The notes below the pieces were generated by a model. The model had not been told where the DNA came from, searched no databases, and saw nothing but the letters and a program-made list of their open reading frames with translations. The translations under genes were made by a program, and so were the position numbers. DNA of 64,000 nucleotides from NCBI RefSeq assembly GCF_040938485.1, contig NW_027271481.1, forward strand, positions 310,001-374,000, written 5' to 3'. The DNA comes from Diadema antillarum (Eukaryota). Positions 555 to 62,257 of the stretch are shown here, one piece after another (within the stretch, counting starts at the first letter, position 1; each line of letters opens with the position of its first letter).

Positions 555-1748
555 TTAATGATTGTGGGCATTCTCTGTATTGTATGACTTTTCCACAGTA
601 GAAAAGAGATGTTCCCGGTTGCAAGTTTTTTTACACTGAAAAACATTTCTAATGGCTGCTCGGAACCTCGGGTACTGGGATGCGTATATGAAAGGGTTGG
701 CGCAAGAGTTGACACAAATCAGTACAGACACAGCGTTGTGAAGAGGACTGCGTAGGTACGAGTGCAGCTTTCCTTGCTGGAGATATACCAACAAAAAGGC
801 AGTTAAGTGAAAAGGAGCAAACGTCAGGATGTACGTTAAGACGATGAGGAGGGTCAGCTTGGTCAAACGGTTGCGAGCTCGTATGTGAGTGGACGATACC
901 GAGGAGGCCTGAGAAAGACTCTTGCGTGCGCGGCGTGATTGACGATGGAGTGACCATGCCGTTACCGTCTGTGTTACGATCATGATGGTAACAGGGAAGC
1001 CAAACCTAATCATGAGTAAGTAGAACAAGATTGTTTTACTGGACTTAGCTTCAACTAGGAGCTTACAGGTGTTGTTGACCACCGCCAAATCAACCGAATA
1101 GAGACAGGATGTAAACGAGAGAACACACACCGCCGATATGAATGAATAAATTTTGCGAGTGGTGACGTAAGATCGGAAATGGAGTGGACTCACCACTGCA
1201 ATCGTGCGTTCGATGGCTATTCCAACAAGAGTATAAATGGACATGTGGACTGCGACCCACATGAAGTTACGCGAGTATACAAACTTACAGTAGAGCGAAC
1301 CAACTGGAGTACGCGGAACCCTGACAGCAAGAGGTAAGGGTAGGATAGAAATGGATGTCAGTAGATCAAAAACTGCCAGTGCTCCGATGAAGATGTCGGT
1401 CGAATGTTTATTGACTCCTACTTGCATCCGTAATGCGAGGATAACGAGCAGGTTTCCTAGTATCCCAACGAAGGCAAAGCTCATCTCCAGACCATTCACC
1501 CACGTCCATTCAAAGAACCATACCCACTGCAATTGGTCGAGCTCTGGTGGATCACCGGGTTGATTTGTCTCGTCACTTTCGGTAGAGGAATTCCATGGAA
1601 AATTGCTTCTGCGAATTCCTGGAGTTCCTGCATCTTCTATGTCTATGGTTCTGTCCTCCGAGACGGCGGTTTTACCAGAAAATGCGTCAAGAGGAGATGC
1701 CAGGTCTCCATGGACTATGATACCAATCGCTACAACCAAAAACCACAT
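555..1748 (-). CDS. Class A (rhodopsin-like) orphan GPCR, copy 1, 397 aa, single coding exon, predicted signal peptide
   Basis: Seven hydrophobic segments with GN (TM1), LAxxD (TM2), C..ERT (TM3, DRY variant), FP (TM5), TFAP (TM6), NPFIY (TM7) and helix-8 RFR. ATG context GTCATCATG. Confidence 0.93.
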   Translation of the reverse strand: MWFLVVAIGIIVHGDLASPLDAFSGKTAVSEDRTIDIEDAGTPGIRRSNFPWNSSTESDETNQPGDPPELDQLQWVWFFEWTWVNGLEMSFAFVGILGNLLVILALRMQVGVNKHSTDIFIGALAVFDLLTSISILPLPLAVRVPRTPVGSLYCKFVYSRNFMWVAVHMSIYTLVGIAIERTIAVVSPLHFRSYVTTRKIYSFISAVCVLSFTSCLYSVDLAVVNNTCKLLVEAKSSKTILFYLLMIRFGFPVTIMIVTQTVTAWSLHRQSRRARKSLSQASSVSSTHIRARNRLTKLTLLIVLTYILTFAPFHLTAFLLVYLQQGKLHSYLRSPLHNAVSVLICVNSCANPFIYASQYPRFRAAIRNVFQCKKTCNREHLFSTVEKSYNTENAHNH

Positions 1749-1782
1749 GATGACGAAGCCTAGAAGTCAGTCTGTGATATCT

Positions 1783-2452
1783 CTATCGTCGAAGAAGAAA
1801 GATAAACGATCGAACTCGAATTACGTTTTGAAGTAACATATAAGCAGGTAATATGATAAGACAACAAAGATTAAGAATCAAAATTCTCACTATGAAGATT
1901 GCAAGGAAATTCAGTGAAAGTGATGACAAAATTATCTTTTCTATTCGGTAAAACTCATAATTCTTGAAATTTGTGGTATTCATATTAACTATCTCTTATT
2001 TTGCCGTTTGCAAATGTTTTACCAAGCATTCAGAAAGTCCATCCTGATAGTGTAAAATTGATGTAGTTTCAGTGGCGCACACTTTCATTTTAATATTGCT
2101 CAGGTACTGTGAAAAGTCAGTGGCATGAATCACGTAAATTAAGAAACAAAAGTCCTCGACAGTATTCAATATCGAAATAAAACCCTACATACATGAGTCA
2201 GAACAATCATAAGCTATGACTGGAACAGATGTAGCAAAGTGCACTCGGAATTGCAACTTATGAACTTACATGCTTTGCTCGGTGATGAAAACGAGGAAAA
2301 AATACGAAGAAGAAGAAAAAGAAGACTGGTTCGAGTAATGCGTGCTGTATCCGAAGACCGAAAATTTCACCTCATCAAAATATGTTTGTACTTCAAATAA
2401 ACTGTCATCAGATAGAGAAGAAAAAACTGGAAATGAATATAATGGCACTTAC
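1783..2452 (-). other. Predicted 5'UTR intron of copy 1
   Basis: Minus-strand donor ATC|GTAAGT at 2452 and acceptor TTTCTTCTTCGACGATAG|A at 1783, 34 nt before the ATG. Both signals are positionally conserved in all 8 copies. Confidence 0.65.
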
Positions 2453-2677
2453 GATAAAAGTCTGACTATTGGCTCTCCTCACGAGTCGGGATGATGGCAA
2501 GAACGATGCTGAGAGTGTTGTCGTAGTCTCATTGGATTGGACTTCTCGGAAATGTCTATTTGTACCCCATTTAGGACAGATAACATTGTCGAACCTGTCA
2601 CTCCAACAGGATTTGAAGCAAAAACCAAACACATCATTGTTGCAGTTGGGGCTCGACCAATAGAAAAACACCTGCAA

Positions 2678-2724
2678 TACGCAGGCGCATTGGAGCGAGT
2701 TGCGCAATGACCTCTCTGCGCAGA
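2678..2724. promoter_or_regulatory. Conserved CpG-rich module upstream of copy 1 (NRF-1/P3A2-like, C/EBP-like, nearby CCAAT boxes)
   Basis: TACGCAGGCGCA (minus TGCGCCTGCGTA), TTGCGCAA palindrome at 2700-2707, third TGCGCA at 2717-2722. Retained in all 8 units. Confidence 0.55.
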
Positions 2725-4256
2725 TATCAAATTGCTAGAAATCACTGATCTCTACCAGAGATATCTCATCCTACGTCCTTGGTGTGGTTTGGAGGATTTT
2801 GCTTCCCCCCCCCCCCATGCACTTTTGATTCTTAAAAAAAAAAGTCAAAAAAAAATCGAAAAAGAATCAACCCCCATGAATTTCAATTTTCGACTATTCC
2901 GCTCTTAGATTCTTCCCATCTAAGCGGGGTACCACTGATCTTTACCCCCTCCTCCTGTCCCGTTGCCTCCCCCCCCCCAAAAAAAAAGAAACCCACCAAA
3001 ACAAAACACAAACAAACTGAAAAACGCTCCGCGGCCCGTGCACGAGAACTGCCCTTGTTGCTTGCCCTGACGCACTCCCACCTCCTCACCGGCACAACGC
3101 GAAGAGTACCCCTCCCCAGACACACACAATATACACATTTACACACACACACACTGACAATCGATCGGCTCCCCCTGTGATATTTACAAGCTTGCAGATA
3201 AGTTGAATTAAAGTTGCACAGGATCAGAATTATGACAAAGATAATTATTACCTACGTGCCTTCCTGAACATTCTTCCTAAACTTCATATGTCAGTTGCAA
3301 AATTATTTGTGAACCTGATCATAACAGTCCTTGGCCTCCTACAGTAAACTTGTCTGAAAATCCTATACAGGTATAGTTATCAGTAAGTATCCGAGCCTTG
3401 AAACATAAGCACATTCCATAGGACAAAGTAAACGATTCCTTAAAAGAAAAACAACAACAATTAGGATATGGCATTTGAACTAAAACAATGATATTACATG
3501 CAAATGAGACAAAGTATGATCATATTGTCATTGTTGTCAGTGAGCAGAAATTGGACAACTGGCTGACAATCCGTTGCAAAAGAAACAACTCGACACAAGA
3601 ATAATTTCGTAATGAATCCTTTCTATGCTGTATTTCTTTCAAAATGTGTTAGATATCATATCTAAATGCTCCTCTGACGTATCCAAATAAATGTTTCTTA
3701 TTGTATGCATAAAGCCATATTCTACATCATCGTTCCCGAAAAGTTAAAGTAAAAACAAATAAGTAAGTATGTGTATATGGGGGGACTACGGGTATCATAA
3801 AGTCATTTACTTGAGTTCTTTTTTCAATCCCTCTCAAAAAAAAAACCAACAACAACATCCAAGAACCTTTACGGTGAAGCCATCAGCATTCAAGTATCAG
3901 TATTCAATCACTTCATTTTCATCGAACAGTTATTTTATTTCCTTCGAACAGTTTTATCGATCAGTCCATACTGACTACACTGAAAAGAGTTCGCTGAATG
4001 GTCATTTTTTTTCTTCTCATGTGCACAGAATGAAATATCAAAGGAGAGCGAAACGTCAAGAAATCAATCTGGAATTTTCAGTTTCTTAGATTTTTCCTTC
4101 GGAAATGTCGCTAATGGATTTCCTATTCAATTCATTACCCTGTACTCCTCATAGGAAGGATGTTGAAAAGCAGGGAGTTAGGAGTTACGTTTAAACGGTG
4201 TTCCTCAACTTCAAGGGTAGTATAGCTAACTTCCAGGATAAGGTCTTGTCCCTTAA

Positions 4257-7916: not shown

Positions 7917-8242
7917 TTATCTATCATTGTCATCAAAGAGAAAAAATATCAAAATAGACAAATTGCCTCATAAAAAGCCAACCATAACATGTTTTTCGTA
8001 TAAGTCAAACTTGTCAAAGGTCAGTTGCTCGTTATGATAAACAGCATAATCCCTGCACACCTGTAGGACTAATCCAATCAATAAATCTCAGTTCTTTTCG
8101 AGTCACTTGTTTTTGGACTAACTTTCATTGATCATTGATTCCATTTGTGAAAACATTATCGTACTATATCTCACAACTTCAAAAACATAGAAAAGTTTTG
8201 CCGGCATTTCTGTAACTTTTGGTCAGCACTTTGACGAAAAGA

Positions 8243-9210
8243 CAAAAAGCTGTATTTATTTTTTGTCTCAAGTCAAACCTCTTGCCTCCAATATTTAACA
8301 TAATATTTCGGTCAAATTCAGAGATTCACTCTTATCCAACCAGACAATCCACAAATTTACATTTATTTAACCCCAAAACCGCACTCGCGCATCATTCTAA
8401 GAGACACTCTGGCCCTGACACTTGGAATTCCCTTCCCATTGAAATTAAAAACATGACCACTATGTATTCATTTAAGAGGGCTGTAAAACTTCACCTCCTT
8501 AAGCAGTATTGCCCAGGATAACATTCTGATTCCTTTATTGTATCATAATCAAATGTATATGAATATGTACGTGATACATAATGCATGGATGTGTGCATAC
8601 ATATATCGATTTATTTATCTATCCATATTATGAATATGAGTATGTATGTGTATGTATAGGATACATCATGTATATATTATGAGCATGCATGTGTACGATG
8701 TGCCTTACCATTACTGCGTACATAAAACAAGCACGATATATTTTATTCAATGTCAGATAACAATACGTATAAGATATTTTGTATTCACATATTATTATTT
8801 TCATAGTGCATATTCGGTCATTACTCCTTCAAAGGCAACTGAACGTGTTAACTTTAATATTATTATCATATTGTATTTATCATCATTACTATTATTGTAA
8901 AGTAGTTGGAGTGGTACCCATACACTCTGTAACTTTCCCTATTCCCCCTACCCTTCCCTATTTCTCTCAATTCTCTATTCCCTATTCTATTCAGAGTAGG
9001 TAAGCATATAGTCTCCATACCGTCAAGCCTCGGCTTATTTTGGAGACCCTTCTGTTTAAGTTCCATAAGCTTGTATGTTTGTATTTGTCTTGTATAATTG
9101 TACTAAAAACTATGTGTCGATATCACTGTTTGTCATAAATGACATGTACATGATCCTATCTGATGTAACGGAATTAAGCAGAAATAAATCAAATCAAATC
9201 AAATCAAATC
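8243..9210 (+). mobile_element. 5'-truncated non-LTR retrotransposon (L2/Crack-like) 3' end
   Basis: ORF 8219-8521 ends LPPIFNIIF..HSYPTRQ..GPDTWNSLPIEIK..SFKRAVKLHLL; (AAATC)n tail at ~9186-9210. Interrupts unit sequence GACGAAAAGATTTT that is intact at 165-178. Confidence 0.8.
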
Positions 9211-9557
9211 AGATTTTCAGCTTTAAATTATATATCTGACCAAATATGGATATTCCTCATCGACTATTTCTGATGATTGGTTGCATGGTATATTCAGTCA
9301 CTTATGCATTTCGAATTCCCTGAGGCACCCACTCTCGATTGCCAAACTTTATTTGCCCATACCTCATATGCCATTTTCACACAACATTATAATGACATGT
9401 AGGTATATCATTGAGCCTAGTCTTTATTTACTTCTAAACAGGATTACTATGAAACTATTCCCCATCACGCTAACATCAGTCGACTTCCAGTAGAGTTTTT
9501 TTTTCTTGAACTTCACAATAGATGTAGAAGGGCATAACAGTCATATCACAACATAAA

Positions 9558-10249
9558 TGTGACCCTGCACCTCGAAACAAACAAAAAGTCGCCAGACATG
9601 AATTTTTAGTTAAGACCATATTCTGAAAGAGCAGACTTTAAACTTTAAAATGATGTATAACTCAAATCAGATGGACTCTCCTAACCTATCTAAATATTGG
9701 AAAGAAAGCACAAACTCAGGAAAAGTGTGAACTGAGAAAAGAGGCTCTGAAGTACAGTGTCTACTCAAGCGCTTAATCTTTACCAAACCATGCTGGCTGT
9801 GAGATGAATGGGACAAAAAACAGGAAGAAAACCACCAGAGTAACAACAATGAAGGGATTATCAGATTAAACTGAAATTGAGCATGCCACATTAACACATT
9901 CTGTCCATGATTAATGCCAACTTTCAAAGCACTAGCACTATCCTTTCAAAAGTTATTAGAGTTGAAAGTGAAGAGTGTGGACAAGGTTTTTCAGAAATGA
10001 AAAAGGGATTCTAAAGACACACCTAATCACACTATTCTACAAAAAATGTTTGAGATAAACTGCTAAAAAAAACGCACTTTCCGGCCCGTTTTATGATACC
10101 AAATTTTAGCATAATGTAAAAGAATACCCGCTCTTTCAGAAAATATGAAAAAGTCTAGTTCGGCTAGGTTGACCCATTTCACTTATTTTCAGTCCTCACG
10201 CAAAATCAGTGTGTGCGACTTTATGTTCGTTTTGAGGTGCACGGTCACA
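9558..10249. mobile_element. 692-bp MITE (TGTGAC..GTCACA termini) just 3' of the copy 2 stop codon
   Basis: ~35-bp TIRs TGTGACCCTGCACCTCGAAACAAACAAAAAGTCG / CGACTTTATGTTCGTTTTGAGGTGCACGGTCACA. The empty site ACATAAATATTAGG in copy 1 implies a 2-bp (AA) duplication. Confidence 0.85.
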
Positions 10250-10286
10250 AATATTAGGAGTGGGAGTAGGACCTACTCGCACATAA

Positions 10287-11474
10287 TCAATGATTGTGGG
10301 CATTCTTTGTATTGTATGACTTTTCCACGGTAGAAAAGAGAAGTTCCCGGTTGTCAGCTCGTTTGCAATTGAAAACATTTCTAATGGCAGCTCGGAACCT
10401 TGGGTACTGGGATGCGTATATGAAAGGGTTGGCGCAAGAGTTGACACAAATCAGCACAGACACAGCGCTGCGAAGTGGACTGCGTAGGTACGAGTTCACC
10501 TTTCCCTTCAGGACGTACACCAAGGCAATTACGTGAAAAGGAGCAAATGTCAGGATGTACGTTAAGACGATGAGGAGGGTCAGCCTAGCCATGCGGTTTC
10601 GAGCTCGTATGTGAGTGGACGATACCGACGAAGCCTGAAAAAGACCCTTGCTTGCGCGGCGCGATTGACGATGGAGTGACCAGGCCGTTACCGACTGTGT
10701 TACGATCATGATGGCAACAGGGAAGAAAAACCTGATCATGAGTAAGTAGAACATGATCGTTTTACTGAACTTGGCTTCATGTAGGAGCTTACAGGTGTTG
10801 TTGACTACCGCCAAATCAACCGAATAGAGACAGGATGTAAACGAGAAAACACACACCGCCGATATGTATGAATACATTTTGCGAGTGGTGACATAAGATC
10901 TGAAATGCAGTGGACTCACCACTGCAATCGTGCGTTCGATGGCTATTCCTACAAGAGTATAAATGGACATGTGGACTGGGACCCACATAAAGTAACGCGT
11001 GTATGCAAACTTACAGTAGAGCAAGCCAACTGGAGTACGCGGCACCCTGACAGCAAGAGGTAAGGGTAGGATAGAAATGGATGTCAGTAGATCAGAAATT
11101 GCCAGTGCTCCGATGAAGATGTCGGTCGAATGTTTATTGACTCCTACTTGCATCCGTAATGCGAGGATAACGAGCAGGTTTCCTAGTATCCCAACGAAGG
11201 CACAGCTCATCTCCAGACCATTCACCCACGTCAACTCAAAGACCCATACCCACTGCAATTGGTCGAGCTTTGGTGGATCACCGTATTGACTTGTCTCGTC
11301 ACTTTCGGTAGAGGAATTCCACTGCAAATTGCTTCTGTGAATTCCTGGAGTTCCTGCACCTTCTATGTCAATGGTTCTGTCCTCCGAGATGGTTGTTTTA
11401 CCGGAAAATGCGTCAATAGGAGATGCGAGGTTCCACTGGACTATGAGACCAATTGCTACAACCAAAGACCACAT
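10287..11474 (-). CDS. Class A orphan GPCR, copy 2, 395 aa
   Basis: Full 7TM ORF with the same motifs as copy 1. Kozak-like GCCATCATG start. Confidence 0.93.
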   Translation of the reverse strand: MWSLVVAIGLIVQWNLASPIDAFSGKTTISEDRTIDIEGAGTPGIHRSNLQWNSSTESDETSQYGDPPKLDQLQWVWVFELTWVNGLEMSCAFVGILGNLLVILALRMQVGVNKHSTDIFIGALAISDLLTSISILPLPLAVRVPRTPVGLLYCKFAYTRYFMWVPVHMSIYTLVGIAIERTIAVVSPLHFRSYVTTRKMYSYISAVCVFSFTSCLYSVDLAVVNNTCKLLHEAKFSKTIMFYLLMIRFFFPVAIMIVTQSVTAWSLHRQSRRASKGLFQASSVSSTHIRARNRMARLTLLIVLTYILTFAPFHVIALVYVLKGKVNSYLRSPLRSAVSVLICVNSCANPFIYASQYPRFRAAIRNVFNCKRADNRELLFSTVEKSYNTKNAHNH

Positions 11475-11509: not shown

Positions 11510-12166
11510 CTAGAAGAAGGAGGATTAACGATTATACTCGAATTACGTTTTGATATGACGTATTTAGATATTCAGACAGGCAATAACACATCGGAGATTC
11601 ACCCTCACTTCTTAAATTCCAATTATCAAAATTGCCGGAACATTCAAAAGAGGAGATGCCATGATAAGGTTTCCTATTTCTGTAAAACACAACATTCTTG
11701 AAATTTGAAGAATTCATATTAACAATCTCGAATTTTGCTGTTTGCAAATCTTTTACCAGGAAATCCACATAAGGTAGATCCAGACAACTAATATTGATGA
11801 AGTTTCAGTGGTGCATATTCTATTTGTGAAAAGACAATGACACGAATCATGTCAATGAAAAGAAAGGAATATTTAGTGTAGAGAGCAAACCCTACATACA
11901 TTGATCAAAACATTCACAAACCAGCCATGACTGGAACAGATGTAGCAAAGTGCAGATTAAATTAGAACGGGTGAACTTATGCTTTGGTCGGTGATATTAA
12001 ACGAGAACGAAAAAGAAGAAGAAGATGAAAAGGGTATACTGTATCGAGTAATGCGTGCTATATCCGAGAACGAAAGTCCGACATCATCAAAATATGTTGG
12101 TACTTCAAATAAACTCACCCATCAGACACAGACGGAAAAGTTGTAACAGAACATAACGCAATTTAC
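11510..12166 (-). other. Predicted 5'UTR intron of copy 2
   Basis: Donor GAC|GTAAAT and acceptor CCTCCTTCTTCTAG|G at positions homologous to copy 1. Confidence 0.6.
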
Positions 12167-12391
12167 GTCAAAGGTGTGACTATAGACACTCATCACAAGT
12201 CTGGATTACGGCTTAAACGATGCTGACAGTGTGTGGTAGTCTCATTCGATAGGACTTCTCCAAACATGTCTATTTGTACCCCATCTCAGACAGCTCACAT
12301 AGTCGTACCTATTTCTCATAAACGATTCGAAGCAAAAACTGAACACGTCATTGCCGCAGTTCGAGTACCACCAATAGAAAAACACCTGAAA

Positions 12392-12438
12392 TACGCAGGC
12401 GCATTGGAACGAGTTGCGCAATGACCGTTCTGCGCAGA
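12392..12438. promoter_or_regulatory. Conserved GCGCA/C-EBP module, copy 2
   Basis: TACGCAGGCGCATTGGAACGAGTTGCGCAATGACCGTTCTGCGCAGA. Confidence 0.55.
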
Positions 12439-16665: not shown

Positions 16666-17859
16666 TTAATGAATGTGGACATTTTCTGTATTGTACGACT
16701 TTTCCACTAAAGAAAAGAGATGGCTCCGGTTGTCAGCTCGTTTGCAGTTGAACACATTTGTAATGGCAACTCGGAACCGTGGGTACTGGGATGCGTATAT
16801 GAAAGGGTTGGCGCAAGAGTTGACACAAATTAGCACAGACATAGCGCTGTGAAGAGGGCTACGTAGGTAGGAGTGCACCTCTCCCTGCAGGACGTATATC
16901 AAGCCAGTTAAGTGAAAAGGAGCAAATGTCAGGATGTATGTTTAGACGATGAGGAGGGTCAGCTTGGCCATACGATTGCGAGCTCGTATGTGAGTGGACG
17001 ATACCGAGGAGGCCTGAGAAAGACCCTTGCGCGCGCGGCACGATTGACGATGTAGTGACCATGCCGTTACCGACTGTGTTACGATCATGATGGTAACAGG
17101 GAAGAAAAACCTGACCATGAGTACGTAGAACATGATTGTTTTACTTGACATGAGACCATGCAGGAGTCTACAGGTGTTGTTGATCACCGCCAAATCAACC
17201 GAATAGAGACAGGATGTAAACGAGAGAACACACACCGCCGATATGAATGAATAAATTTTGCGAGTGGTGACATAAGATCGGAAATGGAGTGGACTCACCA
17301 CTGCAATCGTGCGTTCGATTGCAATTCCTACAAGAGTATAAATGGACATGTGGACTGCGACCCACATGAAGTTACGCGGGTATACAAACTTACAGTAGAG
17401 CGAACCAACTGGAGTACGCGGCACCCTGACAGCAAGAGGTAAGGGTAGGATAGAAATGGATGTCAGTAGATCAAAAACTGCCAGTGCTCCGATGAAGATG
17501 TCGGTCGAATGTTTATTGACTCCTACTTGCATCCGTAATGCGAGGATAACGAGCAGGTTTCCTAGTATCCCAACGAAGGCACAGCTCATCTCTAGACCAT
17601 TCACCCACGTCCACTCAAAGACCCATACCCACTGCAATTGGTCAAGCTTTGGAGGATCACCGGATTGACTTGTCTCGTCGCTTTCGGTAGAAGAATTCAA
17701 TGACAAATTGCTTCTGTGAATTTCTGGAATTGCTGCTACTTCTATGTTTATGGTTCGCTCCTCCGGTATGGTGGTTTTACAAGAAAATGCGTTAAGTGTC
17801 GATGCTAGGTCTCCATGGACTATGATACCAATCACTACAAATCGAACCCAAGACCACAT
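16666..17859 (-). pseudogene. GPCR copy 3 with a single premature stop in TM6
   Basis: ORFs 16942-17859 and 16666-16902 are in the same frame. Codon TTA(Leu)>TAA at 16942-16944. Otherwise a full-length 7TM sequence. Confidence 0.85.
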
Positions 17860-21854: not shown

Positions 21855-21858
21855 TTAA

Positions 21859-22419
21859 AGGACAAGTCCACCTTCATACACATAAGGGTTGAGAGAATGC
21901 AGCAATATTAGTAGAACATATCAGTGAAAGTTTGAGGAAAATTGGACAATCCGTTCAAACGTTACGAATATTTTAAGTATCTGCGCAGTCACTGCTGGAA
22001 GAGAAGACTACTACAGTGTATGATGTCACATGCGTACAACTATATAAGGGAAATAAAAAGAGAATTTCACAAAACTTTACTTTTTGAATAAAGTGCACAT
22101 TTCCTCGACTTGCTACTGACGTATACGTTAAGGGTAATATTATTCCCCCTGCCTTCTGAAAGAGAGAAGTCGAGTGTTCTTTTGTTTTGCGAGAAAAATG
22201 GAAATATGTTGAATTTTCTTTATTCTTTCTTCATATCGTTGTACTCATGTGGCATCACAAGCTATAGTAGTCTTTTCATCCAGCCATGACTGAGAAGAAA
22301 CTTCAAAAATTCATAACTTTTGAACGGATTGTCCGATTTTGTTCAAACTCTCACTGATGTGTTCTACTAATATTGCTGTATTCACTCAACCCACATGTCT
22401 ATGAAGGTGAACTTGTCCT
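21859..22419. mobile_element. 561-bp Kolobok/T2-type MITE (same family as 53172-53739)
   Basis: TTAA TSDs at 21855-21858 and 22420-22423. Long TIRs AGGACAAGTCCACCTTCAT.. / ..ATGAAGGTGAACTTGTCCT. Confidence 0.88.
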
Positions 22420-22793
22420 TTAACGCATAAACGAATTCCATTGAAAAAAAGTCGACGATTCCTTAAAAAAACAATTGGGATATGACATTTGAATTAAAGC
22501 AACGACATTGCATACAAACGAGACATATATTTGGTTGGTCGTATTTACATTATTGTCACATGAGCAAATATTGTACAGCTGACTGACAATCAGTTGCAAA
22601 AGAAACAACTCGACGCAAGAACAGTTTCGTAATGATTCCTTTCTATAATGTATTTCTTCCAAATACCTTAGATATTATTCCTAATTCGGTCTTCTAACGT
22701 ATTCAGAAAAAAAACGATTCTTAGTGCGTGTGTAAAGCCCTGTCCCACACCATCGCTCCCAAAAAGTTAAAGTAAAGTAAAAACAAGTACATG

Positions 22794-24702: not shown

Positions 24703-26885
24703 CTTGGGAGGGAAGATTAGCAGAGTAAATAAACTTGAAGAATAATGCAATATGGAAGTATAGAAGTGTTATGAGAAACGGGTGATCCTCGTTCAATCCC
24801 ACACTGTGTATTTTATCTGTAAGAGGCAAATGTCTTCAGTTGACCTTTCTCATTTTCCAAGAAAGTTTTTTTTTAACATACTTTTACAATTCATGCTGTA
24901 CAAAAGCTACTTAGACTGTTCTTCAAAGGAAGTGAAATAGGCCTACAGGTTCTGTATGGTCCCCCTGTCTGTTTGATACCCATGAACAAGACTGAATGTA
25001 GGAATCTCTCAGCCTGTTTCTTTCAGTTCTGTTGCCATCTTGCCACTCTCTTAGATGATTGAGGTTTCATTGCAGTAACCTGAAATAGATATCATGGTGT
25101 ATAGCTTCTCGCAAAGCTCTTCACATTTCATGATCATGGTGTCCAAGAGTTCACGATGCACTGATGCTTCAAACAGGAGATCATGGGTAGCCTGCCCTAT
25201 CGTTAGTAATATGGACTGTACATTCGTTTGAAGTACTTCCCTGTGAATACGTGGCATATTGTTGAGGGAGAAAAGAAAACTGAAACCACTGTCCTCAAGA
25301 TACTTTGCGAACTTGCATGCACTGATGCAGAGCAAACATGGAGTTCACCAATTCGAAGAATCCAGTTCCCATTAAGAGTGCAATGTGGTTGCTCTCTCAT
25401 ACAAGTCAGGTTCAAGAGTAGCGACTGTTTTATGATGACGACCATGCCACTAACTGATATTCCTTTAGCACGATTTGAGACCGCCAAGAGGGCTGAATTG
25501 TTGTTGGTATTTGAAAACATCTGACCGCATGAAAGCTTCAAATCTCTCGTGTCTCACTGTTTCCATCAGAGTACCAACGCAGTTGAATCTCCCTATCAAT
25601 GGTTTACTCTGTAAAGTGTTGAGTGATCTTCAAGAGACTAACGTCCATTGGGACAAATCAGCGTGTAGAGATTACTCTGCAACGTCAAGAATATTGCAAG
25701 ATATACTTGCTTGCTTTTCTTCATTTTCTCGGGGCAACATCAGTTTTGACTAGCACCTTCAATCGTATATTAATGGCGTCTTTTGTACAAATAGTTAATG
25801 ACTGGAGCTCAATATATCATACTTATTAAATTTATGGCGGCCATTTTGAATTGTGAGATGACTGTCACTCTGCGTGACCTGGAAATTAAGGTCTAACTAC
25901 AAAAATTTTGGCATATTTGAAGCTCTGAACATGGGTATTCTCTCAAGTTACTTTTGTCTAAGGAGGTCATCAGTGGATACGTAAGCCAGCATTATTATGT
26001 CGTTTTTTTTTCTATGGTGGCCATCTTGAATTTCATGACGCTGGCCTAAGCTATCAACTGATCCACAATTTTGAGAAAAAAAAAGTTGAACTGGTGTTCT
26101 TGGACACCGCAAGCATGTGTATTCCCAAAAATGTGAAGCTTTTACAATGATTGAAACCAGAAATATGGGTAAAAATACATTTAACTATGGCGGCTATTTT
26201 GAAGTTCAAGATGGCGGCCCATCAAAACAACCCAAATATTAGAAAAAGATGTATCAGGATATCTGACACGACAAGCATGCTTTTTGCACCAAATTTGAAC
26301 CTTCTACGATACTCACATTATGAGATATGGGCCAGAATATAGTTTGCTAGGGCGGCCATTTTGAATTTCAAGATGGCAACCTATCAAGATGAGCCATGAT
26401 ATCAGAAAAAGAAGGATCAGAATATTTTACATGACAAGCATGCTTTTTGCACCAAATTTGAACATTCTACGATACTCACATGATGAGATATGGGCCAAAA
26501 TACAGTTTGCGATGGCGGTCATTTTGAATTTCCAGATGGCGGCCTATCAAAAGAAGCATAATAGAAAAAGATGAACCAGAATGTCTGACATCACAAACAC
26601 GCTTTTTTTAAAGCAAATTTGAATCTTCTACGTTGCTCACTTTATGAGATATGATGGGTCAAAATAGAGTTTGCTCTGGCGGCCATTTTGAAATTCAAAA
26701 TGTCGACTGAAGACGTGGTCGAAAAAATGGAATCAAAGTTGTTGGGTTGTTTTGTTTTGTTTTGTTTTTTTTTTTTGATTCAGCACCCCAAAATTGACAT
26801 TTCTTAAAAATCTATTTTGGCAAGAAAGTCTCAAAGTATTATATAGTAACCTCTACTATAATTAATTTTATTAAGTTATTTTTTT
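24703..26885. other. ~2.2-kb foreign insertion in the spacer (unique segment plus tandem repeat), possibly a rolling-circle element
   Basis: No counterpart in the other units. Unit sequence stops at ~24702 and resumes at ~26886. Confidence 0.4.
26130..26720. repeat. ~163-bp tandem repeat (about 4 copies) with a GGCGGCCATTTTGAA-TTCAAGATGGCGGCC palindromic core
   Basis: GCACCAAATTTG recurs at 26286 and 26449 and degenerately at ~26611. Related single motifs at ~25836 and ~26007. Confidence 0.8.
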
Positions 26886-29225: not shown

Positions 29226-30416
29226 TTAATGAGTGTTGACATTCTCTGTATTATCATATGACTTTTCCACAGTAGAAAAGAGATGTTCCCGGTTATCAGC
29301 TCGTTTACAATTGAAAACATTTCTAATGGCGGCTCGGAACCTTGGGTACTGGGATGCGTATATGAAAGGGTTGGCGCAAGAGTTGACACAAATCAGCACA
29401 GACACAGCGTTGTGAGGAGGACTACGTAGGTACGAGTGCAGTTTTCCCTGCAGGACATATACCAAGCCAGTTAGGTGAAAAGGAGCAAATGTCAGGATGT
29501 ACGTTAAGACGATGAGGAGGGTCAGCCTGGCCATACGATTGCGAGCTCGTATGTGAGTGGACGATACCGAGGAAGCCTGAGAAAGACTCTTGCGTGCGCG
29601 GCGTGATTGACGATGGAGTGACCATGCCGTTACCGACTGTGTTACGATCATGATGGTAACAGGGAAGAAAAACCTGATCATGAGTAAGTAGAACATGATT
29701 GTTTTACTGGACTTGGCTTCAAGTAGGAGCTTACAGGTATTGTTGACCACCGCCACATTAACCGAATAAAGACAAGATGTAAACGAGAGAACACATACCG
29801 CCGATATGTATGAATAAATTTTGCGAGTGGTGACGTAAGATCGGAAATGGAGTGGACTCACCACTGCAATCGTGCGTTCGATTGCTATTCCTACAAGAGT
29901 ATAAATGGACATGTGGACTGCGACCCACATTAAGTTACGCGAGTATACAAACTTACAGTAGAGCGAACCAACTGGATTACGCGGCACCCTGACAGCAAGA
30001 GGTAAAGGTAGGATAGAAATGGATGTCAGTAGATCAAAAACTGCCAGTGCTCCGATGAAGAAGTCGGTCGAATGTTTATTGACTCCTGCTTGCATCCGTA
30101 ACGCGAGGATAACGAGAAGGTTTCCTAGTATCCCAACGAAGGCACAGCTCATCTCCAGACCATTCACCCACGTCCACTCAAAGAACCATACCCACTGCAA
30201 TTGGTCGAGCTTTGTTGGATCACCAGATTGACTTGTCTCCTCACTTTCACTAGAGGCATTCAATGACAAATTGCTTCCGTGAATTCCTGGAGTTCCTGAA
30301 CGTTCTATGTCTATGGTTCGGTCCTCCGAGATGGCGGTTTTATCAAAAGATCCGTCAACTGGAGATGCTAGGTCTCCATGGACTATGATACCAATCGCTA
30401 CAACCAAAGACCACAT
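29226..30416 (-). CDS. Class A orphan GPCR, copy 4, 396 aa
   Basis: Full 7TM ORF with all family motifs intact; GCCATCATG start. Confidence 0.93.
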   Translation of the reverse strand: MWSLVVAIGIIVHGDLASPVDGSFDKTAISEDRTIDIERSGTPGIHGSNLSLNASSESEETSQSGDPTKLDQLQWVWFFEWTWVNGLEMSCAFVGILGNLLVILALRMQAGVNKHSTDFFIGALAVFDLLTSISILPLPLAVRVPRNPVGSLYCKFVYSRNLMWVAVHMSIYTLVGIAIERTIAVVSPLHFRSYVTTRKIYSYISAVCVLSFTSCLYSVNVAVVNNTCKLLLEAKSSKTIMFYLLMIRFFFPVTIMIVTQSVTAWSLHRQSRRARKSLSQASSVSSTHIRARNRMARLTLLIVLTYILTFAPFHLTGLVYVLQGKLHSYLRSPPHNAVSVLICVNSCANPFIYASQYPRFRAAIRNVFNCKRADNREHLFSTVEKSYDNTENVNTH

Positions 30417-31440: not shown

Positions 31441-31578
31441 NNNNNNNNNNNNNNNNNNNNNNNNNNNNNNNNNNNNNNNNNNNNNNNNNNNNNNNNNNNN
31501 NNNNNNNNNNNNNNNNNNNNNNNNNNNNNNNNNNNNNNNNNNNNNNNNNNNNNNNNNNNNNNNNNNNNNNNNNNNNNN
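31441..31578. other. Assembly gap (N run)
   Basis: 138 N. Confidence 0.99.
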
Positions 31579-34015: not shown

Positions 34016-36253
34016 GTTTAAATCACCCGTCAGAAATTCTGTCATTGGGTAAAGGGTGTTCGTGAGTACTGTACTTTAAACGACTTATATGTAGTACTTT
34101 TAATGCTTTATTATGTTCATATCATTTTTTAAGTTAAAGTGAGAGCTTTTCATTATCACTGGAACAAATGGTCGTCGTTAAAAGTTTTAGAACGAAAGGC
34201 GAAAATCATTCCTTAATAGGTAGATATAACGTATTGAAAGTAACATAATATGAAATAAAGCCCCACTATGATCGCCAGACATATGTTGTCATCAAAGTGT
34301 CATTGACACTGTAACATGTTTCTCTGGTAGTGACAGATAAATTGTTATCTACATTACATTGTACACATTTAATTTGCAGTTTCAGCACAATGTACGCTGT
34401 ATGTTATAATGATGTCAGATCTCGGAGCAGTCACATTTCAGTAAAAGAAGTGAATATATCAAGAATTACCTCAATTCAATGCATTTCTAACTCACGTTGG
34501 TATGGTAAATATGAGAGCTGTATCTCGACATTTTCTTATTAACGTAAGCATATTCACAAGCACATTTCCACTTGTGGTAGTGTCGCCCCCCCCCCCCCCC
34601 CCGGATCTGCGACTTCTTATTCGGACAATTTTTTTCCAGCATGTTCGACAACAGATATCTTTTCATAAAAACCTACTTAGTTTTGAAGGTACACGTAGTC
34701 TTATTTGCAGTCATAATGAAATTGATCGCTCGGATTCTGAATTTGAATGCCCGAATAATTTCGCGTGCGTCCGCTATGTAAATTTGAATGCGGATTAAAT
34801 GAATTTCACTGACAAAAGCATGAAATTGACCGGGGAAACCCAGTGCCGTATATAATATGTATACGGCACTGGGGAAACATATATAAGAAGTCACGTTTAT
34901 CCATCTTACCTGACTTCAACGAACCTTACAGTATTTGATAACGAAGTTCATTGTACGGTGTGCTTATGTGTGCATGTGTGTGTGTGTGCGTCCATTTTGA
35001 ATCCGACTTTTATGATTTTGCAACCTGGTGTAAAATTTTGACGATCAAGTCTAAACAAAATCAAATAATGAGATTCAACTGGACTTCGGGACACACGTGA
35101 GACGGGAGATGGTACTACAGGAGTCTTGCGTTGTATGAGTCTTCGTAGCGAAGTTGAAATTAGTCTTTCTCAATAGGGCCGCTAATTTGTGTTTGAATAG
35201 CACGTGTGTCACTTTTTTTTACTGTTACTTGCTGCTCGGAAAAAGTGTTATATTGTAGGTGTAGGTGTTGTTTTCTACTCGAATCCAAAACTCTTTTACG
35301 CCATAATCTTTCGTCATTCGAAAGCGGGCCGAGTTTCATTTCCCGCGTTACAGTTCACCATTATTCTTCGTTTGTCCGAAATGTGTTTAACCCGAAAACA
35401 AAAAAGGTTCCTTATCCCGACGATTCGATAATCAGAAAACGAAGTAAGGTGAGTGTATTCCGAAGGTTGGTTATACTTTGTAGTCTGGGTGCCAAAGCAA
35501 GATTTTTGGCCTAACCTTGCTTTACCGTCCGCCTAACGTTTTTGATGGTTTTACTCTATTTCGAGGGGCATGGCTATCTTTTTAAAAATCCTCAACGATC
35601 CAAAGTTGCATCACCCAGATACAAATTCAGCACCCTCGAAATAAGGTAAACTGTCAACTTTGCGTTCAATGTTTTACTATTCATAAGGCAATATTGACCT
35701 AATACGTGAAGTTCCGTTGTCACTTCTAGACTATTCCAATCAATATCTCTCAGTGATTTTCGAGTCCCGTGTTTTTGGATTAGCATTCAATCATCAGTGA
35801 TTCCATTTGTAAAAACATGATCCTGCTTCATCCCATAACTCCCAAAAATAACATAGACAAATTTCCCTCGGATTTCTTGAAATTTTGGTCTCCGTTTTGA
35901 GGAAAAGATTTTCAGCTTTATTATTTAACCAAAAATGGATGTTCCTCACCAACTTTCTGTGATGGGTAGTTTCATAGTTCATCCAGTCACTTATGCATTT
36001 TGATTTCTCTAAGACAAGCTACGGTCATTGCCAATGTTACTTGCCCATATAGCTTTAGTTTTGCATGATATTGTTTACACTCGATGTGTAGGTGTGACAT
36101 TAAGTCTTATTTCTATTTAATTCTAAACAGGACTAACGTAATACTACTCCCTATCACCCTGGTATTAATCGACTTCCAGTAGAGGGGTTTTGCTTTAATA
36201 AGAACCCCACAATAGATGTACGAGGGTATAGCCCAGACTCATATCGTAACATG

Positions 36254-36298
<45 letters not shown>

Positions 36299-49718: not shown

Positions 49719-49900
49719 NNNNNNNNNNNNNNNNNNNNNNNNNNNNNNNNNNNNNNNNNNNNNNNNNNNNNNNNNNNNNNNNNNNNNNNNNNNNNNNNNN
49801 NNNNNNNNNNNNNNNNNNNNNNNNNNNNNNNNNNNNNNNNNNNNNNNNNNNNNNNNNNNNNNNNNNNNNNNNNNNNNNNNNNNNNNNNNNNNNNNNNNNN
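49719..49900. other. Assembly gap (N run)
   Basis: 182 N. Confidence 0.99.
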
Positions 49901-52989: not shown

Positions 52990-53171
52990 TAGTGTGAGTA
53001 GGATAGAAATGGATGTCTGTAGATCAGAAACTGCCAGTGCTCTGATGAAGATGTCGGTCGAACGTTTATTGACTCCTACTTGCATCCGTAATGCGAGGAT
53101 AACGAGCAGGTTTCCTAGTATCCCAACGAAGGCACAGCTGATCTCCAGACCATTCACCCACGTCCACTTAA

Positions 53172-53739
53172 AGGACAAGTTCACCTTCATAAACATAAGG
53201 ATTGAGAGAATGTAGCAATATTAGTAGAACACATCATTGAAAGTTTGAGGGAAATTGGACAATCCGTTCAAAAGTTATGAATTTTTGAAGTTTTTGTGCA
53301 GTAACCGCTGGATGAGAAGACTACTGCAGTGTGTGAATAACTTAGATGTCACATGCGTACAACAATATACGGAAAATATAAAGAGAATTTCACAAAATTT
53401 CATCTTTTGCAAAAAGTACAAAATCCCCCGACTCGTTACCGACAAATGTTATGGGTAATATTATTCCCCCTACCTTTAGAAAGAGTCAAGTCAAGTGCTC
53501 TTTTATTATGCGAAAAAAGTGAAAATATGTTGAATTTTCTTCACATTTTCTTTATACTGTTGTACGCATATGACTCACAAGCTGTAGTAGTCTCCTCATC
53601 CAGCGGTTCCAACACAAAAATTTTAAAAATTCATAACTTTTGCATCGATTGTCCAATTTTCCTCAAACTTTCACTGATATGTTCTACTAATATTGTTACA
53701 TTCTCTCAATCCTTATGTTTATGAAGGTGAACTTGTCCT
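53172..53739. mobile_element. 568-bp Kolobok/T2-type MITE in copy 7
   Basis: TTAA TSDs at 53168-53171 and 53740-53743; TIRs of about 90 bp starting AGGACAAGTTCACCTTCAT. Removing it restores a colinear GPCR sequence. Confidence 0.92.
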
Positions 53740-54011
53740 TTAAAGACCCATACCCACTGCAATTGGTCGAGCTCTGGTTGATCACCTGGTTGATTTGTCG
53801 CGTCAGTTTCGTTGGAGGAATTCCATGACGAATTGTTTCTGCAAATTCCTGGAGTTCCTACACCTTCTATATCTAGGGTTCGGTCCTTCGAGATGACGCT
53901 TTTACCAGAAAATTCGTCAAGAGGCGATACTAGGTCCCTTTGGACTATGATACCAATCGCTACAACCAAACACCACATGATGGGGAAGCGCGCCTTAGTC
54001 TCTGATATCTC

Positions 54012-54700
54012 CTACGACAATAAAGATAAACGATCGGACTCGAATTACGTTTTGTAGTGACATATACACGTATAGATATTGTAGCAGGTAATAAGACAAC
54101 AGAGATTAAGAATCAAACTTCTCATTATGAAGAATACAAGAAAATTCAATGAAAGTTATGACAAAATTATCTTTCCTATTCGGTAAAACTCATAATTCTT
54201 AAAATCAGAATGTGTATAAACTATCTCTTATTTAGTTGTTTGCAAAAGTTTTACCAAGCATTCAGAAAGTCCATCCTGATAGTCTAAAATTTGTGTAGTT
54301 TCAGTTTCATCCATTGTTCAGGTACTGCGAAAAGTCAATGGCATGAATCACATAAATGAAGGGAAAAAAAGTCCTCAACAGTAATTGATATCGAAATAAA
54401 ACCCTACATTCATGAGTCAAAACAACCATAAGCCTGCCATTACTTCAACAGATGTAGCAAAGTACATTGGAAATTGGAACTTGTGAACTTATATGCTTTG
54501 CTCGGTGATAAAAACGAGGACAAAAGAAGAAGAAGAAGAAGAAGAAGAAGAAGAAGAAGAAGAAAAAGAAGACTGGGTCCAGTAAAGCGTGCTGTATCCG
54601 AAGACCGAAAATTCCATCTTATCAAAACATATTCGTACTCCAAAGAAACTGTCATCAGATAGGGTAAGAGAATGAAAAGCTGCCACAGAATATAACTTAC
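54012..54700 (-). other. Predicted 5'UTR intron of copy 7
   Basis: Donor GAC|GTAAGT and acceptor TTTATTGTCGTAG|G. Expanded (GAA)n at ~54525-54565. Confidence 0.5.
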
Positions 54701-56444: not shown

Positions 56445-56462
56445 AAAGTGTCCGAGCTTTAA

Positions 56463-57848: not shown

Positions 57849-57898
<50 letters not shown>

Positions 57899-58506
57899 GC
57901 TCACAGGTTTGAATTACCTGTTAGAAATTCGTCATTGGGTAAAGGGTGTTCGTGAGTATGGTACTTTAAACGACTAATATGTAGTACTTTTGATATTGTG
58001 TTCATATCATTTTTTAGTTAAAGTGAGAGCTTTTCATTATCACTGGAACAATAATTGTCGTCGTGAAACGCTTTAGAACAAAAAGGCGAAATTTATTCCT
58101 TAATAGGTAGATATAACCGTAGGCCGAGGAACGTTAATGCCAAACCAGTTTTTTCTTTGTTGTTGTTGAAAGTAACATAATATGAAATATAGCCCCACTA
58201 TGATGACCAGACGTATGTTGTCATCAAAAGTTGTTGAAACTTTGACACACTAACATGTTTCTCTTCCAGTGACAGATAAATTGCTATCTACATTACGTTG
58301 TACACATTTAATTTGCAGTTTCAGCACAGTGTACGCTGAATGTTATAAGGATGTTAGATCTTGGAGCATTCACATTTCAATAAAAGAAGTGAAAATGTGA
58401 AGAATTACTTCATACCTTAAGCACGTTTGCATTAGTGGTAGTGTCCCCTACTCATAAAACTTCTTATTCGGACATTTTTTTTATTCAATATGTTCGAGAA
58501 CAGATA

Positions 58507-58775
58507 TGTGACCATGCATCACAAAATGAACAAAAAGTCGCACACACTGATTTTGTGTGAGGACAGAAAATAGGTGAAATGGGTTAACCGAGCTGATCTT
58601 TAATTTTTCATATTTTCTGGAAGAGCAAGGCTTCTTCTACATTATGCTAAAATTTGGTAGAATAAAACAGGCAAAACAAGTGTGTTTTCTAGCAGTTTAT
58701 CTCAAACATTTTTTTTTTTTTTTTTGGCGGAATAGTGTGATTAAGTGTGTCTTTTAGAGTCCTCTTTTCATTTCT
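58507..58775 (-). mobile_element. Truncated, inverted, diverged copy of the TGTGAC MITE family
   Basis: Reverse complement of the right ~270 bp of 9558-10249 (TGTGACCATGCATCACAAAATGAACAAAAAGTCGCACACACTG..). Confidence 0.75.
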
Positions 58776-58989
58776 TAGTTACAGACATGTACATTCAACG
58801 GTGTGCACTCTTTGACTCTAACACACACACGCGCACGCACATGCACAGACACGCACGCACATACATACACATACACACACACACAGACACACACACACAT
58901 AAGAATTCTCCTTTTACATTTCTAGGGCTAGTCCAATCAATAACTTTCAGTGACTTTCGAGTCCCTTGTTTTTGGATTAACATTCCCTG

Positions 58990-59385: not shown

Positions 59386-59812
59386 TCATTGATTCCCTTT
59401 GTGAATCAACATGGTAGTGCTTCATCTCATAAGTTAACAAAATGAAGAACAATGTTGCCCGCCTTGCTTGAACTTTTGGTCTGCCTTCTGAATAAAATAC
59501 AGCTTTAAATGGTACATTTTGTAACCAAGAATGGACGTTCCTCTTCAACTTTCTCAGATGGGTGGTTGAATGGTACATTCAGCCCTTATGCATTTCAATT
59601 TCTCTGAGGCACCCAGTGGCCATTGTCAATCTTAAATGCCCATATAGCTTCATTTTGCTTCAATATTATATACACTCAAGATTTCAGTATGACATTATAA
59701 GTCTCATTTCTATTCAATTCTACATAGGACTTACATTATATTATTCCCTATACTTCCGAGGGGTTTTGCTTGAACTCTCAAAATAGAAGCGTGAGGGTGC
59801 ACACCTAAAGAA

Positions 59813-61000
59813 TTAATGACTACGGTCATTCTCTGCATTGTACGACTTTTCCTGAATAGAAAAGAGATGTTCCCGGTTGTCAGATCGTTTGCACTTGAAC
59901 ATATTTGTAATGGCAGCTCGGAACCTTGGGTACTGGGATGCGTAAATGAAAGGGTTGGCGCAAGAGTTGACACAAATCAGCACAGACACAGCGTTGTGAA
60001 GAGGACTGCGTAGGTTCGAATACTCCTTTCCCTGAAGGACATATACCAAGCTAGTTAAGTGAAAAGGAGCAAATGTCAAGATGTATGTCAGGACTATGAG
60101 GAAGGTCAGCTTGGTCATACGGTTGCGAGCTCGTATGTGAGTGGACGATACCGAGGAGGACTGAGAAAGACCTTTACGCGCGCGGCGTGATTGTCGATGG
60201 AGTGACAATGCCGTTACCGACTGTGTTACGATCATGATGGTAAAAGGAAAGCCAAACCTGATCATGAGTAGGTAGAACATGATGGTTTTACTGGACTTGG
60301 ATGCATGTAGAAGCTTACAGGTGTTGTTGACCACCGCCATATCAACTGAATAGAGACATGATATAAACGAGAAAGCACACACCGCCGCCATGTATGAATA
60401 CACTTTGAAAGTGGTGACGTAAGATCGGAAATGTAGTGGACTCACCACTGCAATCGTTCGTTCGATGGCTATTCCTATAAGAGTATAAATGGATATGTTG
60501 ACTGGGACCCAAATAAAGTAACGCGTGTATGCAAACTTACAGTAGAGCGAACCAACTGTAGTACGCGGCACCCTGACAGCAAGAGGTAAGGGTAGGATAG
60601 AAATTGATGTGAGTAGATCAGAAACTGCCAGTGCTCCGATGAAGATGTCGGTCGAACGTTTATTGACTCCTACTTGCATCCGTAATGCCAGGATAACGAG
60701 CAGGTTTCCTAGAATCCCAACGAAGGCACAGCTCATTTCCAGACTATTCACCCAGGTCCACTCAAAGAACCATACCCACTGCAATTGGTCGAGGTTTGGT
60801 GGATCACCTGATTGACTTGTCTCGTCACTTTCGGTAGAGGATTTCCACTGGAAATTGTGTCTGTGAATTCCTAGAGTTCCTGCATTTTCTATGTCTAGGG
60901 TTCGGTCCTGCAAGATGGCGGTTTCATAAAGAAATCCGTCAACAGGAGATGCTAGGTCTCCATAGACTATGATACTAATCGCTACAACCAAAGACCACAT
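59813..61000 (-). CDS. Class A orphan GPCR, copy 8, 395 aa (true start at 61000, not 61117)
   Basis: MWSLVVAI start homologous to the other copies; all 7TM motifs intact. The upstream 39 codons run across the predicted splice acceptor. Confidence 0.92.
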   Translation of the reverse strand: MWSLVVAISIIVYGDLASPVDGFLYETAILQDRTLDIENAGTLGIHRHNFQWKSSTESDETSQSGDPPNLDQLQWVWFFEWTWVNSLEMSCAFVGILGNLLVILALRMQVGVNKRSTDIFIGALAVSDLLTSISILPLPLAVRVPRTTVGSLYCKFAYTRYFIWVPVNISIYTLIGIAIERTIAVVSPLHFRSYVTTFKVYSYMAAVCAFSFISCLYSVDMAVVNNTCKLLHASKSSKTIMFYLLMIRFGFPFTIMIVTQSVTALSLHRQSRRARKGLSQSSSVSSTHIRARNRMTKLTFLIVLTYILTFAPFHLTSLVYVLQGKEYSNLRSPLHNAVSVLICVNSCANPFIYASQYPRFRAAITNMFKCKRSDNREHLFSIQEKSYNAENDRSH

Positions 61001-61032
61001 GATGCCGAAGCGTGCGTCAGTCTTTGATATCT

Positions 61033-61688
61033 CTATGGTGGAACAAGAAAGATAAACGATCGAACTCGAATTACATTTTGAAGTGGTATACAGATATTCA
61101 GGCAGGTAATAAGACAAAAGGGATTCTTATATGTTATGAAGATTGCAAGGAAATTCAATAAAAGTGATGTCAAAATTATCTTTTCTATTTGGTAAAACTC
61201 ATAATTGTTGAAATCTGTATAGAATTCATATTAAGTATCTCTTATTTCGGTGTTTGCAAATGTTTTACCAAGCATTCAGAAAGTCTATACTGATAGTCTA
61301 AAATTTGTGTAGTTTCAATTTCATTTATTGTTCAGCTCCTGTGAAAAGTAAATGGTGTAAATCACGTAAATAAAGAAAAAAAGTCCTCAACAGTATCTAA
61401 AATCAAAATAAAACCCTGCATACATGAGTCAGAAAAATCATAAGCCTGCCATGATTGCAGGAGATGTAGCAAAGTGCAGTGGAAATAGGAATTGTGAACG
61501 TATATGCTTTGCTCGGTGATAAAAATGAAAGATAACAAAATAAGAAGAAAAAGAAGAAGACTGGTTCCAGTATAGCGTGCTGTATCCGAAGACCAAAAAT
61601 TCCATCTTATCAAAAATATGTCTGTACTCCTAAGAAACTGTGATTACATCGAGAAGGAAAAGCTGGAAATGAATACAATGGCACTTAC
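61033..61688 (-). other. Predicted 5'UTR intron of copy 8
   Basis: Donor ATC|GTAAGT and acceptor TTTCTTGTTCCACCATAG|A. Confidence 0.6.
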
Positions 61689-61913
61689 GATAAAAGTCTG
61701 ACTATAGGCTCGCTTCACGAGTCGGGATGATGGCGAGAACGATGCTGATACTGTGTCGTACTCTCATTGGACTGGACTTCTCCGAAAATGTCTATTTGTA
61801 CCCCATCTGGGACAGACTACATTGTCAAACCTATCACTCCCACAGGATTCGAAGCAAAAACCGAACACATCATTGGTGCAGTTGGTGTTCGACCAATAGA
61901 AAAACACCTGCAA

Positions 61914-61960
61914 TACGCAGGCGCATTGAAGCGAATTGCGCAATAACCCCTCTGCGCAGA
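61914..61960. promoter_or_regulatory. Conserved GCGCA/C-EBP module, copy 8
   Basis: Perfect ATTGCGCAAT at 61935-61944. Confidence 0.55.
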
Positions 61961-62257
61961 AATCAAATTGCTAGAAATCACTGATCTTGGCGTGGTGTGG
62001 AGGATTTTTCTACCCCCCGCCCATAAACATTTCATTCTTTAAAAAGCGGGGTTGACCTTTACCCCCCCCCCCCCCCCCCCCCACAGTACCATAGCCTCTC
62101 CCCTCAAAAACAAAAATAAAGCCACACACACAAACAAATTGAAAAACGGTCCGTGGCCCCTGCACGAGTACTGCCCTCTTTGTTGCTTGCCGTGACGCAC
62201 TCACACCCCCTCCCGCGGCAGAACACAAAGAGTTCCCCTCCCCCACACACAATTAAC

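Follow-up and report, generated by a model that had tools for sequence, protein, structure and literature searches.

Our analysis of a 64,000-nucleotide stretch of contig NW_027271481.1 (positions 310,001 to 374,000, hereafter the window) concerns eight minus-strand paralogs of one single-coding-exon gene for a rhodopsin-class G protein-coupled receptor (GPCR), all lying within 61 kb, which form a tandem array that has very probably evolved by non-allelic homologous recombination. The eight paralogous copies are designated c1 to c8, and a MAFFT alignment of all eight units supplies the column numbers used throughout. The copies are of mosaic ancestry, and the breakpoints can be placed approximately. 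An earlier note on this DNA had claimed that upstream types and ligand-pocket types are shuffled among the paralogs in a way that simple duplication could not produce, and had called for tree comparisons and recombination tests. In pairwise homoplasy index (PHI), triplet, GARD-like and approximately unbiased (AU) tests, the upstream region, the 3' flank and three blocks of the coding sequence gave incongruent trees. Simple duplication along one tree is insufficient, the same tests showing recombination among the paralogs.

Upstream of the coding sequence the copies fall into two types. Exact matches to the type A motif lie at 2447, 39550 and 61683 (c1, c5 and c8) and exact matches to the type B motif at 12161, 18428, 31011, 49106 and 54695 (c2, c3, c4, c6 and c7), both far above shuffle expectation and in agreement with the typing given in the earlier note. 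All 42 fixed differences between A and B fall in columns 171–1203, which cover the promoter, exon 1 and intron ('promoter/5'UTR', for 5' untranslated region, and 'pocket' are inferred labels), with 0 in the 1207 coding columns, and within-type similarity detected by BLAST runs 1–3 kb further upstream. Between A and B the Jukes-Cantor intron distance was 0.356, compared with 0.178 among the A copies and 0.209 among the B copies, while synonymous divergence (dS) was 0.192 between the types, 0.191 inside A and 0.187 inside B. The A|B branch of the upstream tree measures 0.165 substitutions per site, for which ~46 changes would be expected at 282 synonymous sites, and 0 were seen. A D. antillarum array (record JBFRCO010001363.1, designated L001), treated in the analysis as another genus and an independent assembly, served as the outgroup, and in the promoter tree Diadema attaches on the branch between A and B.

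Formal tests place conflicting histories both between the upstream region and the coding sequence and inside the coding sequence. The coding tree was rejected by the upstream data (difference in log-likelihood, delta lnL, 300), and PHI gave 0/2000 permutations for the whole unit and 3/2000 for the coding sequence alone, with no signal in the upstream region alone of seven copies (775/2000). In a 3SEQ-like triplet test of the whole unit, 56/210 ordered triplets were found at p<=0.002, and six coding-only triplets pass Bonferroni correction, with breakpoints near columns 1350–1430, 1905–1950 and 2000. A GARD-like search (dynamic programming on a 100-column grid) lowered the corrected Akaike information criterion from 16643.6 to 16313.2 and placed its breakpoints close to columns 1171, 1371 and 1971, giving four segments that mostly reject one another's trees (AU p 0.03 to <0.001).

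The noncoding 3' flank supplies a further topology, {c1,c2,c6} | {c4,c5} | c3 | c8, in which both clades have 100% support and which rejects the upstream topology (AU; delta lnL 110, p ~1e-6). The flank being neutral, this conflict cannot be put down to selection acting on the pocket residues. The flank segment compared (D1) lies behind c1 at 33..528 on the minus strand, with homologs behind c2 (9205–9566), c4 (28694–29209), c5 (35758–36263) and c6 (46697–47197), as well as behind c3 and c8. A likeness of c1 to c4 in the 3' flank was considered and set aside as a non-homologous comparison, c5 and c2 carrying an inserted element; proper alignment puts c1 with c2 and c6. A shifted duplication unit, in which a gene's upstream region co-duplicates with the neighbouring coding sequence, was likewise rejected, as it fits fewer pairs than same-gene pairing does.

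Several points weigh against recombination as the explanation. The tree of the coding sequence comes close to a star, and when tested whole this sequence fails to reject the upstream A|B clade (p-AU 0.09), for which reason the incongruence was shown block by block: the clade is rejected by columns 1239–1430 (AU p 0.007) and by columns 1431–1925, which span transmembrane helices (TM) 1 to 4 with the 'pocket' included (p-AU 0.003). The segment boundaries used in the AU tests were picked from the same data, as in GARD itself, and in a single haplotype crossover and conversion are indistinguishable. Among the public reads, which are DNA-type Logan unitigs of <=313 nt, no unitig or contig bridging a junction was found. 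A GENECONV-like exact-run test was not significant, the best pair being c1–c3 (78 bp, global p 0.07). Since that test is null, identical runs are at most ~100 bp and every segment is at least 7% diverged, the exchanges are old, with no sign of recent or ongoing exchange.

Individual events can be located along particular copies. In c1, triplet walks place the breakpoints at columns 1172–1240, a junction zone at 1748..1815 on the minus strand; this copy tracks the A copies (c5/c8) to ~column 1172 and then c4/c3 from the ATG onward, and its dS is lowest to c4 (0.119) compared with 0.204 to c5 and 0.187 to c8. In c7, a switch from B to A lies at 54676..54686 (minus strand), ~20–35 nt inside the intron and confined to about 12 bp: diagnostic sites are B at 15/16 scorable positions to column 460, A at 21/22 in columns 474–1154, and B at column 1203. 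These states bear out the earlier description of this copy as having an A-type intron body with a B-type donor and exon 1.

A third case joins c2 and c5, which share an insertion of ~730 bp directly 3' of the stop codon (9543..10268 and 36941..37669, both on the minus strand). The two insertions are 91.8% identical, closer than any other part of either unit, despite the different upstream types of the two copies. Past the insertion, the flank of c2 groups with c1 and that of c5 with c4, and the coding sequence of c2 is internally patchwork. Just behind the c2 and c5 stops we also observed a ~260-bp repeat (9993–10252 and 37397–37654, minus-strand sense), which recurs in inverted orientation ~1 kb behind c8 (58504–58775). 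A 94-bp core of this repeat is 96% identical to D. antillarum (L001 18579–18672; L002 8344–8437), far above the inter-genus neutral level, and the repeat behind c2 and c5 had no match in tRNA or Rfam scans; it may be a conserved mobile element or a functional element. Open reading frames (ORFs) at 36527–37000 (-) and 8219–8521 (+) resemble, by eye, the C-terminal tails of proteins of non-LTR (long terminal repeat) retrotransposons, and one such retrotransposon-like frame sits in an extra ~690 bp of c5 behind the insertion shared with c2.

The comparison array in D. antillarum comprises four intact tandem copies in ~45 kb, ~10 kb apart, and contains a hybrid gene of its own. Gene P0002 (L001 8600–11900) resembles gene P0001 through the upstream region and early coding sequence, and resembles P0003 from the middle of the coding sequence through 800 bp of 3' flank (338/354 sites; p<5e-5), with one breakpoint roughly 300–900 nt into the coding sequence. 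P0002 is thus an independent hybrid gene, and recombination recurs in the sister genus. Copies cluster by species with 100% support (concerted evolution), dS being 0.18 within the window vs 0.46 to Diadema. Of the marks of gene conversion or unequal crossing-over, those present are incongruence of adjacent segments, greater closeness of paralogs within species, and coding divergence below that of the flanks; the long identical tracts of recent conversion are absent. One of the D. antillarum copies, apparently intact, is unannotated (JBFRCO010001363.1, L001 967–2110).

From these patterns we infer that unequal crossing-over and interlocus gene conversion, with exchange points inside the conserved coding sequence or immediately ahead of it, would repeatedly have re-paired the 5' module of one copy (flank, promoter, noncoding exon 1 and intron) with the coding blocks and 3' flanks of others, and would have partly homogenised the coding sequence in doing so. 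The A and B modules would have persisted as two old lineages, presumably too diverged for frequent recombination, c7 being the only exception seen.

The modules themselves share a common plan. A block ~0.95 kb upstream of each ATG is conserved in 8/8 copies and in three D. antillarum genes, and holds short invariant stretches together with a TATA-like TACAAATAG or TATAAATAG. A splice donor, CG|GTAAGT, follows ~110 nt past the TATA-like box (c2 has GTAAAT), and every copy has a pyrimidine tract and then an AG ~35 nt before the ATG; the conserved donor, tract and AG make a noncoding exon 1 and a ~0.7-kb intron, conserved across genera, plausible as a predicted splice structure. On this reading, the type A module of c1 occupies 1784..2718 on the minus strand (promoter block, TATA-like TACAAATAG near 2561, putative noncoding exon 1, donor G at 2452, and intron) and the type B module of c2 occupies 11510..12432 (minus strand; donor G at 12166). 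The type A donor G lies at 39555 in c5 and at 61688 in c8, both on the minus strand, and the minus-strand promoter block of c4 extends up to ~31277, 164 nt short of an assembly gap. Every promoter block conserved with Diadema has been kept by both A and B, so that the two types share these blocks, the TATA-like box and the splice donor, and differ only in the spacers between blocks.

An alternative explanation for the array is that recombination is a functional device, re-coupling expression control (A or B) with the ligand pocket (N or Y) and so diversifying the receptor repertoire. The translations agree with the residue types named in the earlier note: type N (LAVFD with VY[SP]RN..VAV in TM2 and TM3) occurs in c1, c3 and c4 and type Y (LA[VI]SD with A[YF][TM]RY..VPV) in c2, c5 and c8, and c6 is mixed, with S in TM2 followed by V, T, Y and A in TM3. 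All four combinations (A-N, B-Y, B-N and A-Y) do exist, as had been claimed. The four derived N changes (S127F, A157V, Y161N and P166A in c1 numbering) are 4/4 nonsynonymous, and the V/A and N/Y sites of TM3 align to 3.28 and 3.32, pocket positions in the beta-2 adrenergic receptor. A ratio of nonsynonymous to synonymous divergence (dN/dS) of ~0.5 among intact copies is also as in fast-evolving receptor families.

The outgroup nevertheless takes much of the force from this argument. In each of the four D. antillarum orthologs, TM2 has S and TM3 has A..(Y/L)..P; these are Y-type states, and type Y is therefore ancestral and type N derived. Among the derived N states c6 shares only A157V and P166A, so that its mixed residues stand as described in the earlier note, but its reading there as a hybrid does not, the nested pattern needing no recombination; c6 is best read as a nested intermediate rather than a recombinant. 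Similarly, since Y is ancestral, c2 (B-Y) may be plain retention of Y, its link to c5 and c8 consisting of only two derived states (codons 51 and 210). With the outgroup, one exchange (c1) suffices for the promoter and pocket combinations, and the case for a second event, in c2, is weak. It is chiefly the flanks and coding blocks, rather than the two-by-two table, that support shuffling in the array, and of the wider proposal that recombination diversifies the repertoire, the recombination among paralogs is upheld while its combinatorial argument is weakened.

Other observations also tell against a functional device. The TM2 F/S site aligns to 2.49, beside D2.50, which is not a usual ligand contact, and the A/P site falls in a two-residue insertion peculiar to this receptor family in the alignment to the beta-2 adrenergic receptor. 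A and B do not differ in their conserved promoter blocks, TATA-like box or splice donor, 3/8 copies are dead, and the exchanges are old and few. We therefore regard selection for re-coupling as unlikely to be the explanation; a diversified repertoire is a possible consequence of the exchanges. A bolder form of the idea, in which the intron/ATG boundary is the preferred exchange point and long-lived A and B modules serving different sensory cells or stages are re-paired, under selection and in at least two genera, with receptors differing at TM3 pocket positions, seems to us quite improbable. If true, the swapping of modules would be a way, favoured by selection, for echinoderm chemosensation to gain new pairings of receptor and cell type.

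The array could also be the product of a single ancient event, in which one A and one B coding sequence were homogenised once and then duplicated without later shuffling. Such a history would accommodate the near-star coding tree and the tolerance of the whole coding sequence for an A|B clade with a zero-length branch, and it would also accommodate the A|B signal stopping near columns 1154–1212 in all comparisons. However, the A|B topology is rejected by the 3' flank and by the middle block of the coding sequence, coding-only data give a PHI signal and Bonferroni-significant triplets, and further events are seen in the c7 recombinant and the insertion shared by c2 and c5. We consider a single event very unlikely, and continue to favour repeated non-allelic homologous recombination.

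The assembly was assessed from its gaps and from the public unitigs. The two gaps, at 31441–31578 and 49719–49900, are situated ahead of the promoter blocks of c4 and c6, where they touch none of the compared partitions and raise no question of reading frame; each unit from promoter to stop lies within one contig, and all junctions are inside contigs. The sequence to either side of each gap runs colinear with c2, a unit that has no gap, and order and orientation accordingly look right. The gaps are alike in relative position, each in unit-specific extra sequence some few hundred bp upstream of a B-type promoter block, which suggests a common element that is difficult to assemble. Over the c1 intron (2018–2335), unitigs of two independent samples match exactly, with zero differences, and one of these samples also covers the c1 3' flank exactly. 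One X1 unitig matches c1 upstream of 1799 and then continues with letters resembling a c5-type 5'UTR; its source may be a variant haplotype or a paralog that lies beyond the window. The joints listed from public unitigs do not have the canonical form, and paralogs carrying deletions are their probable source.

That the mosaics are assembly chimeras, or haplotigs misplaced in tandem, might be argued from the scaffold, whose two gaps join three contigs, from unitigs too short (<=313 nt) for any to cross a junction, and from the X1 unitig that departs from c1 at 1799, but we hold it to be extremely improbable: since each segment of a copy differs by at least 7% from its counterparts in all other copies and the longest identical run is ~100 bp, an assembler would have had no near-identical sequence on which to switch; upstream differences between copies (11–28%) are too large for alleles; all junctions are within contigs; the c1 intron is matched exactly in two independent samples and the c1 3' flank in one of them; and the same kind of hybrid gene occurs in the independent D. 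antillarum assembly.

Five of the eight copies are intact (c1, c2, c4, c5 and c8), with single-exon frames of 392–397 aa, and three (c3, c6 and c7) are broken and classed as pseudogenes; all coordinates that follow are on the minus strand. The intact coding sequences are those of c1 (555..1748; 397 aa; type N, upstream type A), c2 (10287..11474; 395 aa; type Y, upstream type B; internally mosaic), c4 (29226..30416; 396 aa; N, B), c5 (37680..38858; 392 aa; Y, A) and c8 (59813..61000; Y, A). For c8 the program-listed ORF begins further upstream at an in-frame TTG, and the ATG homologous to that of the other copies is at 61000. Pseudogene c3 (16667..17859; N, B) has a premature TAA at 16943–16945 (codon 306), and c6 (47219..48409; upstream type B; intermediate state set in TM3) has lost 1 nt near 47811 and gained 1 nt near 47540. 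Of c7 only ~80 codons are left (53742..53978), the truncation point abutting a 576-bp palindromic repeat at 53168–53743. This self-reverse-complementary, foldback-like element occurs twice in the window, the other copy being at 21855–22423, and self-comparison of the window also showed tandem repeats with a period of ~160 bp at 63025–63779 and 26008–26705.

The encoded proteins match Pfam 7tm_1 (PF00001) with E ~1e-33 (1.2e-33 for c1), and c1, c2 and c5 score 114–117 bits against a cut-off of 30.5 over profile positions 1–260. Class A hallmarks are present, including D2.50 (LAV[FS]D, opposite D79 of the beta-2 adrenergic receptor in the alignment), NPFIY in TM7 and the cysteine pair of TM3 and extracellular loop 2 (CKF, NNTCK); ERT replaces DRY with R3.50 retained, and TM3 is two residues longer than in solved receptors. 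All relatives found were echinoid, the closest being three 'allatostatin-A receptor-like' Diadema antillarum proteins (71–73% identity), while proteins of Strongylocentrotus and Lytechinus showed 36–38% identity. The genome is accordingly that of a diadematoid sea urchin. The expansion is lineage-specific, the frames of the single coding exon are uninterrupted and the order is tandem, features by which the genes can be assigned, on sequence grounds, to the echinoderm 'OR-like / surreal-GPCR' kind of lineage-specific tandem single-coding-exon receptors.

The window thus puts numbers on the evolution of a sea-urchin receptor array, with two old 5' lineages, a partly homogenised coding sequence and hybrid genes in two genera. 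It also carries a caution for annotation, in that trees of such genes vary with the segment used and three of the copies are pseudogenes, and the conserved noncoding first exon and promoter blocks offer a candidate starting point for the study of receptor-choice control. General knowledge of tandem gene family evolution is unchanged by this array.

Among known systems, the OR-like receptors of echinoderms, the 'surreal-GPCRs' of Strongylocentrotus purpuratus, are rhodopsin-class, have expanded independently per lineage, and mostly have a single coding exon and lie in tandem arrays (PMC7042368). The window array is alike in all of these respects, and its relatives are all echinoid; however, at 36–38% identity to the Strongylocentrotus and Lytechinus proteins, its products are likened to surreal-GPCRs by class and not by any named group A–F. 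Our reading of the literature turned up neither a conserved noncoding first exon nor recombination described for surreal-GPCR arrays. At HMA4 of Arabidopsis halleri, ectopic gene conversion among tandem coding sequences has produced a network-like genealogy, and the conversion is recurrent, recent and tied to dosage selection (PMC3749932). As at HMA4, coding divergence between paralogs in the window is lowered and promoter regions keep separate histories, but the exchanges in the window are old, between copies now 7–14% diverged, and some extend into the 3' flank, which is more like unequal crossover.

A further parallel comes from hybrid genes and gene conversion in the vertebrate olfactory receptor clusters and the red/green opsins, where non-allelic homologous recombination between tandem class A GPCR paralogs gives hybrid genes that pair the 5' region of one copy with the coding part of another. 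Those arrays belong to a different receptor family and phylum from the one described here. Old 5' lineages combined with a partly homogenised, mosaic coding sequence are known behaviour of tandem gene families (for example PMC3749932), of which the window array is a fresh example.

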